From NCBI GenBank assembly GCA_964234715.1, contig OZ174279.1: a stretch of DNA of 64,000 nt. One strand, 5' to 3'. Both the position numbers and the translations under genes were made by a program. The notes under the pieces are model-generated. The model saw only the letters and a program-made list of their open reading frames with translations. It made no database searches and was not told where the DNA came from. This document shows, in pieces, positions 30,570 through 40,329 of the stretch. This DNA comes from Podarcis melisellensis (taxonomy: Eukaryota). Position 1 is the first letter of the stretch, and each line of letters begins with the position of its first letter.

Positions 30570-32312
30570 GTAAGTAGGATCCCCACTATCTGATCCTTGA
30601 ATAATCAGCACATCCTGATTAGTTGAATTCACTGCATTTTTGTAGCATTAGCGCTGTGCTTATAAGGTTTGTGCAAAGTTCTGGTTGCACAAATATTTTG
30701 GCAGTATCTAACTTACACATTTAATTAAGTTTATTTATTGCAGCAGCTACTCAGGGCCATTTCTTGCATGGCAGCTGTTATGTTGAAGAAGTGGCTGCCA
30801 CCAGCATGCACAGTTTCCCCCCATGGTTCTTGTTATGACTGATGCACAAAGGCAGTTCCCAGCAGTTTCTCATGTGACAGCCACGGTATAAGGATTGGTC
30901 CTCACTAGTTTGAACTCTTCTTTGAACACATTCTATCCATTTTAAGATCGGTTTTGCTGAAAGAACCCTCTTAATCAGTTCATAGGATGGACAAAGCTTT
31001 GTTAAGCAAGCAAATTTCATAAGTGTTGCATTAAATATCTATCTTAGTTGTTTTGTTGCTGTCATAGCATAAGTGAAATTTTCTCACACAGTCCTTTGAG
31101 ATGTAATGTAGGTAATGATACTCTAATGGTTTTCAATAATCAACAGGCACACAGATTAACACCAAGGTTCTCTGGAAGAAATACTTTTAAAGCCCTCTTC
31201 CCATTGGCATTAGAAATATTGAGTGACCATACCATCCAAAAAAGGAGAGAGTTCTAGATGTATTTTAGAAAGTGCATAGGTAATATGGAGAGGCAGCATT
31301 CTCAATGATTTCACAGATTTTGGCATAAAAGCTCTGTAATTACTAAATTATCTGTAATCACCAATATGAAAAATTCTCCTTATACTAATATTTCCATTGA
31401 TATGGACACTATACCTCTTTTGATGTTTAGCCATGTCTTTGCTCTGCATGAATTATACAGGATTTGCTATAATATAAATTATGACAGCTGAATCACTTAA
31501 GTAGCTGCGAGTTTCTGATATTGTAAAGCTGCCAATATTACTTACTTTTCACCTGAACATTGGCTAACTTACTCTTGCTATATTCTTAAATGACTCTGAT
31601 GCAGAAAAAAAGAAAGAAAACCTTATGTATAATCAGCCAGAATTGTAGAGTGTTTAATACGAAACAATGAAGCAGTCAAACTCTGATATATCTTCTGATT
31701 ATTACATGAGTTTGTGATGAAAGAGAGAATTCACATTCATCTCTCTATGATTTGGAAGTGCACTCTGTTTGAACTATGGCGTTATGTAGGGAAGGAAAAT
31801 AAGACTTTAGTAATGCTTTTGGGGAATAGCTCGGTTCTGTTTTTATTAAGAAAGACTTGAGTGCATTAGTGAGTAGAGACCAGGATAAACTAAATGCATA
31901 ATAATATACAAGTGACAGACATATACCCGGAATGTCTCATTTTAAAAGAGTAAACTAAGCTCAGCTCTTCCAGTCAATTACTACCAAAAATCTTCTTTTG
32001 AGTGTTCCATTGCACACACATCCTGATCCAAGATAGAGTACTTGGACCTAAGTCCTTTTGATATCACATGTGCAGCCATTAAAAGGACTGGCTTCATGTG
32101 AGCAAAGGAAGACATGGAACTCAGGCTGCTGAGTAACTTGTTTCTCCAAGAATGCCTGGTGTATTTCAACTCCATACAATGAACCCACACCTTTCAACTC
32201 CCACCCTCATGTTTTCTTCTACCCAGGCATGGCCAGGCAAAGCCACTGAAAAAGCCAACAGCGTTGGCTTTAGTATACAGATACGGTTTAAATCCTGGTG
32301 TCTTGTCCTTTA

Positions 32313-32526
32313 CAGTGGTAGCTCAGGTTACATATGCTTCAGGTTACAGACTCCACTAACCCAGAAATATTACTTCGGGTTAAGAACTTTGCTTCAGGAT
32401 GAGAACAGAAATCGTGCTCCGGCAGTGTGAGGCCCCATTAGCGAAAGTGGTGCTTCAGGTTAAGAACAGTTTCAGGTTAAGAACAGACCTCTGGAACGAA
32501 TATGTACTTAACCCGAGGTACCACTG
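32313..32526. mobile_element. Tigger-type MITE
   Basis: TA|CAGTGGTAGCTCAGGTTA...TAACCCGAGGTACCACTG|TA; repeated cttcaggttaagaac motif. Confidence 0.85.
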
Positions 32527-34470
32527 TATTCTCAAACTATCTGGTTTTCATTATTCTGATTGCATTTTTTTTAAAAAAAAAATTCAGTGCAGACTGCCAG
32601 AATAATCAAGCTGCTGACTTTAGGAATTTCCCAGTTGCCATCAAACAGTCTCGGAGCAGGTGGGAGGCCCTGCTGACCACGACATATCAAGCAGCAACTG
32701 CAGCAGGGAAGTGACATGCTTGCTACCTTTCACATGCTGAAATATGCTGCTTCTGAAGAGCCCTGAGGGAGTAGGCACAGGCTGATGGCACCATCTCCTC
32801 TTTTTTTATTCTGTAATTTGGGGGTAGGTGGATTTCTTGCCCCCAACCTAAGATGGGACCGTCTCAGCACTAAAATGGCCTTTTTTCTGATAATAAGGGA
32901 AGGATTATAAATTAGAGAGCAAGAAAAGTATTTTTTAAAAAAGTATATCCTTACATACATGGTTTAAAAAATGTCAAAAGTGTATTCCAGGTTGCAGGTT
33001 GGAATTCAAAAGTTGATGGTAGTTGATCCAAATGACCTACATGTTACTGGGAAAGAGTGTTATGGTTAAGATTTATACAAACATTAGTAAACTGTTTGTT
33101 TATCAGAAAACCGAGGAGGAAAATGCAGTTTATAAAAAATTAAAGTTAAAAATGTTACCAACAAAATCTAGGAATTGCCAAGGTTGTTGCTAAAAAGCAA
33201 AACTTTAGGATCAAGTAAAACTATAATTTCTTCAACACAAATCTGCGTAATTGAATCTTCCATACTCTGATAACTGGTATTTTGAAATCCACCTGTCTCT
33301 GTTAAGCAGAGAAAGACCTTCTAAGATCATGGCCAGTCCACAAAAAATGATGCTTCATACTCATAGATTATGCATCCACTTGCTTGCTCAACAGCCTTGC
33401 ACTGAGACGATGCGGTGATAATGCTGAAATAACAGAATGAATTAGTATATGTTTGTTTTACAAATGAATTCCTAATATAATACCAGAGACATTAGGCATG
33501 TGAAATAAATTGTTACCATGGTGATACCTAATTTACAACACATGAATAAATTCATAAAATCATAATAAAATGGCATGTTGACCATTTCAATCAGTTTGTT
33601 GTGGGCAACAATCCATATAGGTTCTTTTTATAAGTACAGTAAGTATATAGATAGTATTAAAGTACTGGAGAAGTTTCCCTGAAAAATCTTTAGGAGTCCT
33701 GGAAGCCACAGAATCTCAGTCTCAGGGAATTATTTTCTTTGTTAATTAATATCTGCACTAATTATCTTGCTACTTCCTCAGATGTGATCAGGAGTTAATA
33801 ACTGTCACTTTGCTTCTTTAGCTCAGTCACCATAATCACCTCACATGCTGATGCCTGTGCTGGGATAGACTCATCTTATGTTGGAGGAAAGACATCTAGC
33901 TACCAACATACTTTAAATATCTGCCAAAAGCACCCCCCAGATAAACAGGTTTCAATTATTTTTTGGTATGGGGCTCCATTCCTTCAAAGTGGTTGAATAG
34001 CTTCACTGAATAGTTTGAACAATAGTACTCTGATTGAGGGACACGGATGGTGCTGTAGTCTAAACCACTGAGCGTCTTGGGCTTCCCGATCAGAAGGTCA
34101 GCGGTTTGAATCCCCATGACGGGTTGAGCTCCCATTGCTCGGTCCCTGCTGCCAACCTAGCAGTTTGAAAATACAGTGGTGCCCCGCAAGACGAAATTAA
34201 TTCGTTCCGCAATTTTTGTCGTCTAGCGAATTTTTCGTCTTGCGAAGCACGAAATCCCATAGGAATGCATTGAAAATCAATTAATGCGTTCCTATGGTCA
34301 AAAAAAGTCCAAACAAAGCCAAATTTGGTACAACAACAGTTTATTAACTGCTCTTTAAAGTCACACATACTGTAAAGAGCAGTTCAAAAATTGAAGGGAA
34401 AATAAATTAACTTTATAAACATGACAGAAAAACATTTAAAAATCAACAAAGTGCACAGTACATACATTTT

Positions 34471-36171
34471 CTAAGACTCTGGGGGACCACTCGAAGAAGG
34501 CTCCTCTTCCACTCTTTGCTTCTTGGTCAAGAACCTGTCCATAGTCTGCTGCTTTATCCGCCTTTTCAGCAGCTCCCTGAAAGACGACATGACCCTCGTA
34601 TCATAAAAGTTCCCAGCGTCATGTGCCACGTGCTTCTCAGGGTGGTGTAGATCTGCAAAAGTCTGCACCTCCTTCCACTTCTGGCAAATGTCCCTCAGCC
34701 TTTCGGAGGACAGCCGTTCCTCAGTTGCTTCCTCCTCTTCCAGTGAGGCCTGCTCCTGCGCAGCCTCTGCCTGCAGTTCGACCAGCTCCACGGTGGTCAG
34801 CTCGTCGTCGTGCCCCTCCACCAGCTCGCAGACGTCCTCCTCCGTGACCTCCAGGCCCATGGTCCTCCCCAAGGCAACAATGTCCTGCACCACTGTTGAC
34901 TCTGGTGCATCAGAGTCACTTGGTGCCACACAGTCCGGCCACAGGCTGCGCCAAGCGCAATTCAAATTTCTCTGGCTGATCCCTTTCCAGGCCGTGTTGA
35001 CCATCTTCAAGCAGGTGACGATGTCGAAGTGGTCCTTCCAGAATTCCCGCAGGGTGATGGTGGTGCAGTCAGTCACCTCGAAGCATCGCCTGAAAAGCTC
35101 CTTGGTGTAGAGTTTTTTGAAATTGGCGATGACCTGCTGATCCATCGGCTGGAGCAGTGGCGTGGTGTTAGGCGGCAGGAACATGATGTTGATGAAGCTG
35201 AACTCCTCCAACAAGTCCACCTCAAGGCCTTTAGGATGGGCAGGAGCATTGTCCATCAGAAGCAAAGCCTTCAGCGGCAGGTCGTTGTCCAGCAGGTACT
35301 GCTTGACAGCAGGGCCAAAAGCAAGATTGACCCAGTCCACAAACAGCACACGTGTGACCCAAGCCTTGCTGTTGGATCGCCACATGACACTCAGCCGCTC
35401 CTTGTCGATCTTGTGTCTCTTGAAGGCCCGTGGGTTCTCCGAGTGGTACACCAGCAGGGGCTTGATCTTCAGGTCGCCGCTTGCGTTGGCACAGAAGAGC
35501 AGGGTCAGGCGGTCCTTCATGGGCTTGTGGCCAGGCAGCCTGGACTCCTCCTTAGTGATGAAAGTCCTTTTGGGCATCCTCTTCCAAAACAGCCCGGTCT
35601 CGTCGCAGTTGAAGACCTGCTGCGGAACGTAGCCCTCCGTCTTCACAAGCTCCAGGAACTCCGCTGCAAAGTCTTCAGCCGCAGGAACATCAGAACTGGC
35701 AGCCTCTCCATGCCTGACCACGCTGTGGATGCCAGATCTTGTCTTGAACCGGTCAAACCAACCTCTGCTAGCCTTGAAGACTTCTGGCTCGCCTGAGGTT
35801 CCTGGCTGTTCCCGGATGAGGTCAGCGTGCAAGGCCTTGGCCTTCTCACAAATGACGGCCTCAGACACTGTGTCCCCTGCACGCTGCTTCTCTTCTATCC
35901 AGATGAGCAGCAACTTCTCGACCTCCTCCAGGACAGCTGGGCGGTTCTTCACGATCCTGGTGACTCCCTTGGCTGCATCAGTCGCCAGGATCTTCTCCCT
36001 CATCTTCAGGATGGTCCCGATGGTCGATGGGTTCCTGCCGTACTCCCTGGCGATGTCCGTCACACGCATTCCGCCGTCGTGCTTCCAGATGATCTCCTTC
36101 TTCATTTCCAGCGTCACCTTCTCCTTCTTCCTCTCGCCGGCCACCGCAGCAGCAGTCTTCTTGGGTCCCAT
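34471..36171 (-). CDS. Tigger/pogo transposase, 566 aa (CENP-B-type HTH domains plus DDD catalytic domain)
   Basis: N-terminal TLEMKKEII...STIGTILK; FKASRGWFDRFKTR; HGEAAS; catalytic NCDETG, LMDNAPAH and QPMDQ, with 36 residues between the second and third Asp. Strong Kozak gctgccATGG; AATAAA on the - strand at 34340-34345. Confidence 0.95.
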   Translation of the reverse strand: MGPKKTAAAVAGERKKEKVTLEMKKEIIWKHDGGMRVTDIAREYGRNPSTIGTILKMREKILATDAAKGVTRIVKNRPAVLEEVEKLLLIWIEEKQRAGDTVSEAVICEKAKALHADLIREQPGTSGEPEVFKASRGWFDRFKTRSGIHSVVRHGEAASSDVPAAEDFAAEFLELVKTEGYVPQQVFNCDETGLFWKRMPKRTFITKEESRLPGHKPMKDRLTLLFCANASGDLKIKPLLVYHSENPRAFKRHKIDKERLSVMWRSNSKAWVTRVLFVDWVNLAFGPAVKQYLLDNDLPLKALLLMDNAPAHPKGLEVDLLEEFSFINIMFLPPNTTPLLQPMDQQVIANFKKLYTKELFRRCFEVTDCTTITLREFWKDHFDIVTCLKMVNTAWKGISQRNLNCAWRSLWPDCVAPSDSDAPESTVVQDIVALGRTMGLEVTEEDVCELVEGHDDELTTVELVELQAEAAQEQASLEEEEATEERLSSERLRDICQKWKEVQTFADLHHPEKHVAHDAGNFYDTRVMSSFRELLKRRIKQQTMDRFLTKKQRVEEEPSSSGPPES

Positions 36172-36651
36172 GGCAGCACAGCTCCTACCTTCGTAAACTC
36201 AGAAACAGAAAAAAAAATCAGTGATGTGCTTCAAACCCAAAAAATACAAAAGCAGCCAGCCACCCACCACACAGAAATTAAAACCCAGAACCAAGGCCTT
36301 GAATCCCAAGCACCCCAACCCCAAATCCAAAATCCAAAAACCCCCAAAAAAGTTTTAAAAGTTTAGCTTACCAAATGGATGAAAGAGAAGTTCTGGAAAA
36401 GCTTCAACAATCAACCACCGAAGTCCTCAGAAACCTCAAATGACTGCAAAATAAGTTTAGGAAAAGCTTCAAAAATCACCAATGTCTTCAAAAACCTCAA
36501 CTGCTCCCACGGACACGCACCAACCCACCCACAACACAGAAATTGCAAACCCCTCCCCAACTGCTCCCCCAGCCCCTCCCCAACTGCTGCAAACCCCTCC
36601 CCAACTGCTTCCCCACCCAGACAAAAAAAATTTCAAAAAATAACAACATGG

Positions 36652-37462
36652 CCAGCACTCAGAAATTCAAACTCAGAAAAATTTTTTTGAAAAAAAACAA
36701 CCTGGCCCAATGGTCACAGAAAATCATAAAAATTCCCAAAAAAACCCCACATGGTCCCAGATTTCTGCAGAAACCTCCCCAACTGTTCCCCCAGCCAGCC
36801 AGCACTCAGAAATTCAAACTCAGAAAAATTTTCAAAAAAAAACAACCTGGCCCAATGGTCACAGAAAATCATAAAAATTCCCCAAAAACTCCACATGGTC
36901 CCAGATTTCTGCAGAAACCTCCCCAACAGTTCCCCCAGCCAGCCAGCACTCAGAAATTCAAACTCAGAAAAATTTTCAAAAAAAAACAACCTGGCCCAAT
37001 GGTCACAGAAAATCATAAAAATTCCCCCAAAACCCCACATGGTCCCAGATTTCTGCAGAAACCTCCCCAACTGTTCCCCTAGCCAGCCAGCACTCAGAAA
37101 TTCAAACTCAGAAAATTTTTTTTGAAAAAAAACAACCATGCCTAGTGGTCACCGAAAATCATAAAAATTCCCCCAAAACCCCCACATGGTCCCAGATTTC
37201 TGCAGAAACCTCCCCAACAGTTCCCCCAGCCAGCCAGCACTCAGAAATTCAAACTCAGAAAAATTTTCAAAAAAAAACAACCTGGCCCAAAGGTCACCGA
37301 AAATCATAAAAATTCCCCAAAAACCCCCACATGGTCCCAGATTTCTGCAGAAACCTCCCCAACAGTTCCCCCAGCCAGCCAGCACTCAGAAATTCAAACT
37401 CAGAAAAATTTTCAAAAAAAAACAACCTGGCCCAATGGTCACAGAAAATCATAAAAATTCCC
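36652..37462. repeat. ~145-bp tandem array (5 full copies plus 1 partial) inside the Tigger leader
   Basis: The unit ccagcactcagaaattcaaactcag... starts at 36652, 36799, 36943, 37087, 37234 and 37379; copies are nearly identical. Confidence 0.95.
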
Positions 37463-40329
37463 AAAAAAGGCCCACAAGCCCCCAGATTATCGCAAACCCC
37501 TTCCCAACACCAAGTCCTTGAATCCCAAACACCCCAACCCAAAATCCAAAACCCCCCAAAAAAGTTTTAAAAGTTTAACTTACCAAATGGATGAAAGAGA
37601 AGTTCTGGAAAAGTTCTGGAAAAGTTTTGGAAAAGCTTCAAAAGTGAGCAAAGTCTGAGAAAAGGCTACCAAACCACGTGCTAACAGTTGCTCCTCGAAG
37701 TCAAGTCGCAACTGCAGCTGCTCAAGCTAAGCACCCTTGGTTTTAACGGTTTTTACACAAAGGAAACAAAGTCGCGAGACGTTTTCGTTTTGCGAAGCAA
37801 GCCCATAGGGGAATTCGTCTTGCGAGGCAAATCGCGGACGAAAAAACCTTTCGTCTAGCGAGTTTTTTGTCTTGCGAGGCATTCGTCTTGCGGGGCACTA
37901 CTGTACGCCAAAAATGTGCAAGTAGATAAATAGGTACCGCTCCTACGGGAAGGTAAACGGTGTTTCTGTGTGCTGCTCTGGTTTTGGTGTTCCATTGCGC
38001 CAGAAGCGGCTTAGTCATGCTGGCCACATCACTCAGAAAAACTGTCTGCGGACAAACGCCAGCTCCCTTGGCCTGTAAAGTGAGATGAGCACGGCAACCC
38101 TAGAGTCGTCTGCGACTGGACTTAACTGTCAGAGGTCCTTTACCTTTACTCTGATTGCCTTGTCCTTCTGCGTTTAGTGACCAGGGTTTAAAGTAGCCCT
38201 GTCACACAGTTCAGTAGGTTTCAGAGGATGAGCCAGTAGGGGTTTTTTGTTTTGTTTTTGAAGCCAGTCTCAAACCGCTGAAAGCGATTGGGTATCCGAG
38301 CAATATGTTGGTCGATGGAACCGCTGGGCTGAGCTTGCTTGCCAATAGGGTATTTCATGTCATTCTCTCTCCCTCTTCCTGCTGACACTGTGCCAGTTGA
38401 TCCTGCAGGTGGGATATGTCAAATCTCAGTTGGCGTCTTTTCTCTCTAATCACTTCATTTTCCTCATTCATGGTAAGAAAAGATTCATTTGCCAGAACAG
38501 CATGTACTCTGTAAATTTCCTTCTACTCCTTCAGCCCGGCATTTTGCTCGCATAATCTCTGTAATTCGCTGTTAATACCATTGCCATCTCTTAAAATGCA
38601 GTTTATTCCCATCATAATTCCCTGGTGAATGACATGCTTGTGTTATTGGCATGCATTGCTGATTTTTATTTTTATTTTTAATATCTAAAACTATTTTTCC
38701 AAGAATGTTTTCTCTGGCTTCCCAACAGCGGCTTCTATAGAAAACCAATAAGATTCTCCTCCCCCCCCTTTTTTTTGCCTTAATAACATCACTCATGGAT
38801 TCTTCATAACCATATTACATCATCGTCTCTATTCCTAATTACACTTCTGGATTCAAGTCACAACTTTCATTTAGCCATCCCCTTCTCCCAAAGCTGTCCG
38901 AGATTCCAGTTAACACACCAGACGAACTGGTCTTTTTATTTTGGGTAACAGCGTTAAGAGGGCTCATCTCCAAGTCATTTCTCTGGCAATGACAGTGTTA
39001 GAGTCTTTAACAAATCCTGGAAAATATGTGCTTCAACCCAAAACATTCAGTAAAAAAATAATAGTATGCCGTGTAGCTAAGTACTGCCATTTTATCTAGG
39101 CCTACTATGCCTGGGTGCTGTTGTACTATTTGTAAATAGTAGGTTAACAGAAGCATGCTGGTGGGGGGGACGCACACATAAAGTTCAGAGCAGCCTATAA
39201 GAAAGTGCATATTAAGGCTGGGCTGCAGGAAAATCTGTTCCCATTTTTGCAGGTGGGTCAGTGGACTGTGAATGTGAGATCAGTTGTTTTATTAGTACCA
39301 AACAGCTGGAAAAGTTGAGCACAGTTGCGCGTTGATTGTATTCGCCCCCGCCCTGGATTTTAGGCCCATTTCATTAAAAGGTGATGCCTACTTACTGTAT
39401 TGTGGCATCATGATATAGATCAAGTGCACATGCTCAAGGTTCTGAAGATCCATCATTTTGAGTTATTGCTAGGGACTGATGACAGTGTAAGGGGGAGTGT
39501 TTTTTTCTGAATAGTGAGAATACTTGACTACTAACATCTGGGGAGGGGGAATTGTGCACCTTAGTGGGCTGTAGGTGTGAAAAATATCAAAGAAAGCAGT
39601 GTTAATCTGTTCAAATTTACTTTATTGCAGTTATATCCCACTTCTTGTCCAATGAGTTCAAGGCAGCATACATTGCGTCTCACACGTTATGTCTAGCTTT
39701 GTAATGATAACCCTATGAAGCAGCTTAGGCTGAGACATAGTGAATAGTCCAAGGTCAGTCTTAGTATAGATTTGAATCTTTATCCCTAGTCCTAGTCCAC
39801 TCTTCTAACTGCTGTACCACACTGTCCCAGAGGCAACAATAACAATAACACTGTACTGGCACTGGGGTTAGAGACACTCAAAATTCACAGGAGCTGGGAA
39901 AATACATCAGTTGTAATAGAAAATGATTTCATTTTAATGTACAAATTAAATCTGGTATCCTGCATGCAGTTAACACACACAAAAGCCCATTGATTTGCAC
40001 AGGTAATTAATTGCAGGATTGCAGTCTGTGAATTTAAATTACCATGCTTTTATTCGCGTAGGGAAGGCGCAGCATACTAATGATAATATGAATTTAAAAG
40101 CATCTGTTTTCCAGCAGAGTAGGAGTAAATTATAAACTGATAAAACCAGGCACCAAGAAAAACACAGCAGATCTTAGTTTATGAGCTCAATCACATTGGC
40201 TTCAGAAATACTCAAGTTACACGCAGTCACGTATGGGCACTTAGTTCCCACTGACAACAAGGGGAATCCAAATTACTCATCTAATTGCAGAATTTAGTTT
40301 GCTGGATAAAAGAGGAAGTGAATTGGGGG

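Follow-up and report, generated by a model that had tools for sequence, protein, structure and literature searches.

The leader of a Tigger/pogo DNA transposon from the lizard Podarcis melisellensis has, in our judgment, an even chance of holding at least one genuine intron, which ends at the AG at 36199 and whose use is slight or limited to certain tissues or species. The transposon lies on the minus strand of a 64,000-nucleotide stretch of DNA (assembly GCA_964234715.1, contig OZ174279.1), referred to here as the window, and its leader extends for 1.73 kb upstream of the ATG of the transposase open reading frame (ORF). Splice sites are read on the minus strand and numbered by window position throughout. 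An initial annotation, made from the sequence alone, had proposed that the transposase mRNA contains two non-coding leader exons, with a tandem array situated wholly within the first intron. The splice signals, the array, and the duplications on which that proposal drew were recovered, and one joint matching its second intron was observed, whereas the first intron and the two-exon form were not.

Results

A joint connects two predicted splice sites

Reads from four public runs (X1, X5, X15, and X21) were aligned to the element. X15, with 1.36 Gb of contigs and a flat profile, is evidently DNA. X1 is a small contig set from the same species and was taken to be RNA because its ORF is 10 to 100 times richer than the leader after normalization to X15. 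X21 consists of raw stranded RNA reads from the same species (∼12% of the run), in which joints were listed from three reads upward, and X5 derives from a sister species. On the basis of its small contig set (76 Mb, compared with 1.36 Gb for X15) and of the high-copy repeat flanking the element, which reaches a mere ∼24 times the ORF depth in X5 versus ∼2000 times in X15, our guess is that X5 represents RNA rather than low-coverage DNA; its depth is flat across the ORF and the leader.

One X5 contig carried the joint 36197|36372, with CT..AC ends on the plus strand that correspond to GT..AG on the minus strand. The depth of this contig was 161 as compared with ∼1500 beside it, and the joint was absent from the DNA-like X15. 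The two sites connected, a TTG|GTAAG donor and the AG at 36199, are ones that the initial annotation had listed, and 1 nt of sequence is shared at the joint. It is very unlikely that a random deletion would have joined two independently predicted sites to the base. Because the 30 letters preceding the two donors of the leader are identical, the donor of this joint may be donor 2, giving an intron of 174 nt, or donor 1, giving an intron of 1386 nt with removal of the whole array. The joint expected for the proposed first intron (37584|36443) was not seen in any of the four runs. The claim of leader splicing is partly supported, by one TTG|GTAAG donor joined to AG 36199 in a single X5 contig, and that of intron 1 is not.

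Splice signals and their chance levels

The annotated donors, acceptor, 72-nt exon, CTGAT motif, T-rich tract, AGs, and gctgccATGG context were each located at the minus strand coordinates given for them. Donor 1 has its GT at 37583-37582, the GT of donor 2 (TTG|GTAAGC) is at 36371-36370, and acceptor 1, cttattttgcAG, has its AG at 36445-36444. CTGAT at 36221-36217 is followed by a 17-nt T-rich tract and by AGs at 36199-36198, 36190-36189, and 36186-36185, the first of which sits 27 nt before the transposase ATG (36171-36169, within gctgccATGG).

When the GT sites of the leader were scored with a rough donor matrix, the two donors ranked 1st and 3rd among 135 sites. The AG at 36199 is the sole AG of the leader with at least 14 pyrimidines in the 16 upstream positions, and acceptor 36445 ranked 2nd among 123 AG sites by a crude pyrimidine score. 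No suitably spaced branch motif accompanies the latter. The GTAAGY motif occurs twice in the leader compared with 0.15 times in dinucleotide shuffles (P ∼ 0.01), the two occurrences being one duplicated event. Across the window GTAAGY has a density of 0.36 per kb per strand, at which ∼0.6 copies would be expected in a leader of this length; with the two donors counting as one duplication, a single GTAAGY donor in the leader lies within chance. Splice motifs by themselves prove no function.

The leader contains 15 sense ATGs, with 13 of them within 37452-36649 (the array accounts for 12, and the other, at 36649, lies immediately 3' of it) and none between 37805 and 37453. As all the ATGs from 37805 to the start codon lie within 37452-36649, none of them would survive splicing from donor 1. 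The final 477 nt before the start codon are devoid of ATG, compared with 5.1 expected (P ∼ 0.001), and the antisense strand shows no such lack. The ATG-free stretch cuts both ways: splicing from donor 1 would clear the upstream ATGs, yet the stretch includes intron sequence.

Transposase RNA and alternatives to a leader intron

The X21 reads on the ORF are nearly all of the type "first mate on +," which in the usual dUTP library denotes minus strand RNA and thus the transposase sense. Sense depth in this run was 8 to 18 along the ORF and 44 to 51 at 36143-36166, and it was 0.4 to 0.5 over 36238-36383, 1 to 2 on exon 2, 0.37 in the bin with the last 41 nt of exon 1 (37584-37624), and 0.00 in nine array bins. 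The corresponding X1 depths were 449 for the ORF, 24 and 6 for intron 2, 18.7 for exon 2, and 55.7 for exon 1, with X15 flat over the same bins. Transposase-sense RNA in X21 and X1 covers the ORF and ends at about 36185-36198, an X1 contig of depth 435 ending at 36184, and the leader exons were present at ∼1/10 of the ORF depth or less rather than at coding-exon depth on the same strand. Most of the ORF RNA sampled therefore starts, or joins something else, just downstream of 36198. This outcome is near the one that the initial annotation had set against its own proposal, namely transcripts that start downstream of 36371 or are unspliced.

The position of these RNA ends weighs against an intron in the leader, as do several other results. 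The joint was carried by one contig in one run, for which the RNA status is a guess and no sister-species DNA control is at hand, and the shorter side of the contig comprises 29 + 1 letters that match both donors, leaving the donor ambiguous. No leader joint was listed for the same-species runs X1 and X21 despite ample ORF depth; for X21, no joint to the leader exons was found at three or more reads, though ∼44 reads reach 36166. X1 contigs with depths in the range of 19 to 56, compared with 435 to 449 for the ORF, run unspliced across donor 1 (37564-37715), acceptor 1 (36372-36651), and the acceptor cluster (36161-36319). The depth of exon 2 is no higher than that of the flanking introns in either run, and the AG at 36199 has a disfavored G at −3. 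Furthermore, near 36200 the X21 sense reads begin and those of the opposite strand end, the pattern expected of a promoter at that site, and the ATG-free 477 nt take in intron 2 along with the end of intron 1, as would be expected of sequence that is often scanned unspliced.

These results raise the alternative that the leader is not normally spliced, with a promoter at about 36200-36650, on the ATG side of the array, producing a short unspliced leader, the splice motifs arising incidentally from duplication of T/G-rich sequence, and the X5 joint being a rare event or a DNA variant. The beginning of sense depth at about 36185-36198, the ATG-free stretch that includes intron 2, and the chance-level frequency of one GTAAGY per leader all agree with this explanation, and X5 additionally contains a non-canonical deletion joint (35821|35991). 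X21 reads in the opposite orientation, with a depth of 3 to 6 over 36165-37624 and 0 to 0.4 over the ORF, form a divergent pattern that would also suit it; such reads could reflect antisense or divergent transcription from ∼36200 or could come from leader-only derivative copies. In contrast, the X5 joint is exactly GT..AG at two predicted sites with 1 nt shared, a result that random deletion would rarely produce; region 36198-36371 lacks CpG or any promoter-like feature; and the sense depth ends abruptly, with no gradual 5' fall-off, although this last point is weak, being an area estimate. We consider a promoter close to the ORF, with no normal leader splicing, to be rather unlikely.

The ORF RNA may instead arise by gene trapping, in which the acceptor cluster and the element's own poly(A) signal capture upstream host exons whenever a copy sits in the sense orientation within an intron; this explanation is compatible with a leader intron. 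Most of the ORF RNA would then consist of chimeras between host transcripts and a few copies of the transposon rather than of RNA driven by its own promoter, and the expressed variants are indeed copy-specific: 36166 T>C was present in 42 of 44 X21 reads compared with 2% of X15 DNA depth, and an X1 ORF contig differed from the window at 14 of 294 letters (∼5%), with most of its variants absent from X15 contigs. Such variants indicate that a few particular copies are the source of the RNA, and these need not carry the present leader. Trapping would also explain why the ORF RNA stops at the acceptor cluster with no listed joint to its own leader, and human Tigger and L1 copies act as traps once SAFB proteins are removed (PMC10901741). 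Nothing direct speaks for trapping here, however, the loose ends listed not including those at 36184-36197, where host exons would show, and we regard it as improbable. Separately, a local pile of X21 reads at 36110-36195 (depth 44 to 51, compared with 6 to 9 just downstream) carries the 36166 T>C change that is rare in DNA. The pile looks like an exon of ∼80 nt from one copy; since AG/GT pairs border it on either strand, its strand depends on the library type.

The full two-intron form, with exons from the transcription start to 37584 and at 36443-36372 separated by introns at 37583-36444 (containing the array) and 36371-36198, is very doubtful, and most of the RNA sampled has another form: all its signals are in place, acceptor 36445 scores well, its second junction was seen once, and its spliced leader would be ATG-free, but the 36443|37584 joint was missing from the four runs, both donor 1 and acceptor 1 are crossed by unspliced X1 contigs, the acceptor is a mutated unit end with no usably placed branch motif, and the first exon base, 36443, has a window letter that differs from every other copy seen in three runs. 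The proposed pair of non-coding leader exons in the transposase mRNA was thus not borne out by the missing intron 1 joint, the unspliced X1 contigs, and the low depth of the leader exons. No use of the middle acceptor at 36445 was seen.

The leader grew by duplication

The duplicated block of ∼120 bp said to hold both donors was confirmed by the matches of 36320-36401 to 37532-37613 (95%) and of 36284-36335 to 37503-37554 (88%), including an identical run of 35 nt (36367-36401 and 37579-37613). Going beyond that claim, a unit of ∼65 nt is present three times in the leader, as u1 (37665-37584), u2 (36505-36437), and u3 (36436-36372), and a GTAAG donor with ∼85 nt of G/T-rich sequence directly follows both u1 and u3, the copies being 88 to 95% alike. 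The array unit partly resembles the sequence following block A2, the partner of A1 (Table 1), and the array was found wholly between donor 1 and acceptor 1, as had been claimed. An in-frame stop and the absence of any ATG mark the leader exons as non-coding. We conclude that the leader grew by repeated duplication of a module composed of the ∼65-nt unit, the GTAAG donor, and the G/T-rich sequence, and that one part of it became the 145-bp array. The 11-nt repeat within u1 (37600-37635) is length-polymorphic, with one unit missing in ∼43% of X5 depth. The 5' 200 nt of the leader are rich in CpG (observed/expected 1.41) and the remainder is poor; such a 5' end fits a terminal promoter without proving one.

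Two further signals were considered as splicing and rejected. Contigs beginning precisely at 36372 (in X1) and at 37584 (in X5) resemble splice boundaries but need no splicing, because a k = 31 assembly graph must branch at the 35-nt identical run. The abundant joint 36500|37660 (276 X21 reads) is bounded by CT..AG, is found on both strands, and turns up in the DNA run X15 as well. It marks an internally deleted, very high-copy DNA derivative, a miniature inverted-repeat transposable element (MITE), that shares 36453-36500 and 37660-37714 with the transposon, along with the ends 37771-37903, at a DNA contig depth ∼100 to 900 times that of the ORF. To the left of 36453, loose ends of the derivative carry the subterminal motif found at the 3' end of the element. 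The derivative is transcribed on both strands in X21, and over 37625-37903, where a transcription start upstream of donor 1 would lie, reads from high-copy MITEs swamp those of the transposon. It is non-coding, in contrast to the autonomous copy studied here, in which the array lies within the transposase leader. Because the derivative joins 37660 to 36500, we infer that the ancestral leader may have run directly from 37660 to 36500, with the intervening 1159 nt (A1 and the array) being a later duplication-expansion.

A complete Tigger/pogo transposon

The features of the element are collected in Table 1. Its 22-nt inverted ends (34174-34195 and 37882-37903) differ by one mismatch and are bordered by the TA target duplication, and the end motif has no other match in the window beyond the two element ends, with 0 expected by chance. 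The transposase matches the Pfam profiles CENP-B_N (E = 3.7e-5), HTH_Tnp_Tc5 (E = 2.6e-12), and DDE_1 (E = 4.1e-37, over the full profile length). Its catalytic triad of D190, D307, and D344, in which the residues were assigned by motif and not by structural alignment, corresponds to DD36D and falls within the DD29-36D range of Tigger, for which 29 to 36 residues separate the second and third D (PMC9219625). Intact squamate Tiggers are 2336 to 3988 bp long, with transposases of 532 to 618 residues and ends of 17 to 26 nt (PMC9219625), and the element is within these ranges in all three measures. It likewise resembles the mammalian Tigger1 and Tigger2 in its TA duplication, ends of ∼22 nt, single CENP-B_N/HTH_Tnp_Tc5/DDE_1 transposase, and DD36D triad. 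By every feature tested the element belongs to the Tigger family, and it is by its sequence intact and young; the copy is apparently autonomous and still mobile.

Table 1. Features of the Tigger/pogo transposon and its leader, by window position.
Feature	Position	Strand	Basis or remark
Complete Tigger/pogo DNA transposon, 3730 bp	34174-37903	-	Inverted repeat ends; TA at 34172-34173 and 37904-37905
5' inverted end and CpG-rich subterminal repeats; candidate promoter region (inferred)	37701-37903	-	17 CpG, observed/expected 1.41
Unit u1, 3' part of candidate leader exon 1; holds 11-nt repeat, 3.3 copies	37584-37665	-	Alignment
Donor 1, TTG|GTAAGT; possible donor of the X5 joint, direct use not seen	37578-37586	-	Sequence reading and read laying
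G/T-rich block A1, duplicate of intron 2 start	37503-37583	-	Sequence alignment
145-bp tandem array, 5.8 copies, 93% matches	36651-37488	-	Holds 12 of 15 sense-strand leader ATGs
G-rich 21-nt repeats, ∼3 copies	36544-36618	-	Repeat search
Unit u2, degenerate unit copy; mutated end makes acceptor 1 (AG 36445-36444)	36437-36505	-	Alignment
Candidate exon 2 (last 7 nt of u2 and u3), 72 nt, non-coding	36372-36443	-	No ATG; in-frame TGA
Candidate intron 2, GT..AG, 174 nt	36198-36371	-	X5 joint 36197|36372
Branch-like CTGAT (A at 36218, 20 nt before AG) and polypyrimidine tract of acceptor 36199-36198	36200-36221	-	
Last 26 nt of leader before ATG; other candidate AGs 36190-36189 and 36186-36185	36172-36197	-	
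Transposase ORF, 566 residues, single long ORF	34471-36171	-	CENP-B_N, HTH_Tnp_Tc5, DDE_1
AATAAA poly(A) signal	34340-34345	-	126 nt past stop codon, within element

An exact look-up of the transposase in a protein collection gave no match, and Rfam searches of both strands of 34100-38000 gave no match at E up to 1. A tblastn search of the transposase against phage records, also without matches, has no bearing on the element.

The transposase ORF is GC-rich (56.6% GC, 0.75 at third codon positions, 24.6% A) in a window of ∼41% GC, which may signify a recent arrival from elsewhere or another relation to host RNA-binding proteins. This composition is the opposite of that of Tigger1, which contains >33% A and whose A-rich coding sequence, like that of L1, is said to attract SAFB (PMC10901741).

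The transposon is nested within another, extremely abundant repeat, as seen in the flanks at 37917-37960 and 34100-34171. The X15 depth of this repeat (∼3 million, compared with ∼1500 for the ORF) and loose ends that match the opposite flank indicate that it is probably a short interspersed nuclear element. A small element of ∼220 bp with Tigger-like inverted ends (TACAGTGGTA..CTCGG type) is located at 32311-32538, 1.6 kb from the transposon, and belongs to a different MITE family.

Discussion

In the explanation that we propose, the 3' splice site of the leader intron would be the AG at 36199-36198 and its 5' site the TTG|GTAAG donor of the duplicated module, used at 36371 (174-nt intron), at 37583 (1386-nt intron, with removal of the array and 12 upstream ATGs), or at both. 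In the RNA sampled, such splicing would be infrequent or restricted to some tissues. Transcription may start in the CpG-rich 5' end, donor 1 may be among the donors used, and the intron may benefit expression.

Spliced transposase mRNAs are familiar from other DNA transposons, including pogo of Drosophila and Ac and En/Spm of plants, and the leaders of Ac and En/Spm are long. The introns of those elements interrupt coding sequence, in contrast to the present element, in which the ORF is uninterrupted and candidate introns are confined to the 5' untranslated leader. Tigger elements, like those of L1, have been described as single-exon genes that lack introns (PMC10901741), unlike this transposon with its 1.73-kb repeat-built leader and at least one likely intron, and we found no report in the literature of a leader intron in a Tigger element.

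The initial annotation had suggested that a host gene-like architecture might aid expression or evasion of silencing, and for the latter idea work on the human silencing hub (HUSH) gives a concrete, testable mechanism (PMC8770142). HUSH, which recognizes mobile DNA for silencing by its lack of introns, represses long intronless transcription units, its component periphilin binds Tigger transcripts in human cells, and an intron inserted into a reporter counteracts the repression (PMC8770142). Those findings concern human cells, reporters, and L1, whereas the element described here is from a lizard. It is improbable, though worth stating, that a currently active vertebrate Tigger family gained and then duplicated a true spliceosomal leader intron, becoming intron-bearing, unlike the intronless units that HUSH recognizes; such an element, having a poly(A) signal of its own and a strong 3' splice site 27 nt upstream of the start codon, could also act as a natural gene trap driven by host promoters.

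What these results firmly establish is an intact Tigger of ordinary type whose leader is duplicated and carries a minisatellite; the working intron remains a lead. If that intron is real, it would be a case of a leader intron arising and multiplying through simple tandem duplication, and if it works, the element would allow the escape of a DNA transposon from HUSH surveillance, through resemblance to a host gene, to be tested in a natural setting.

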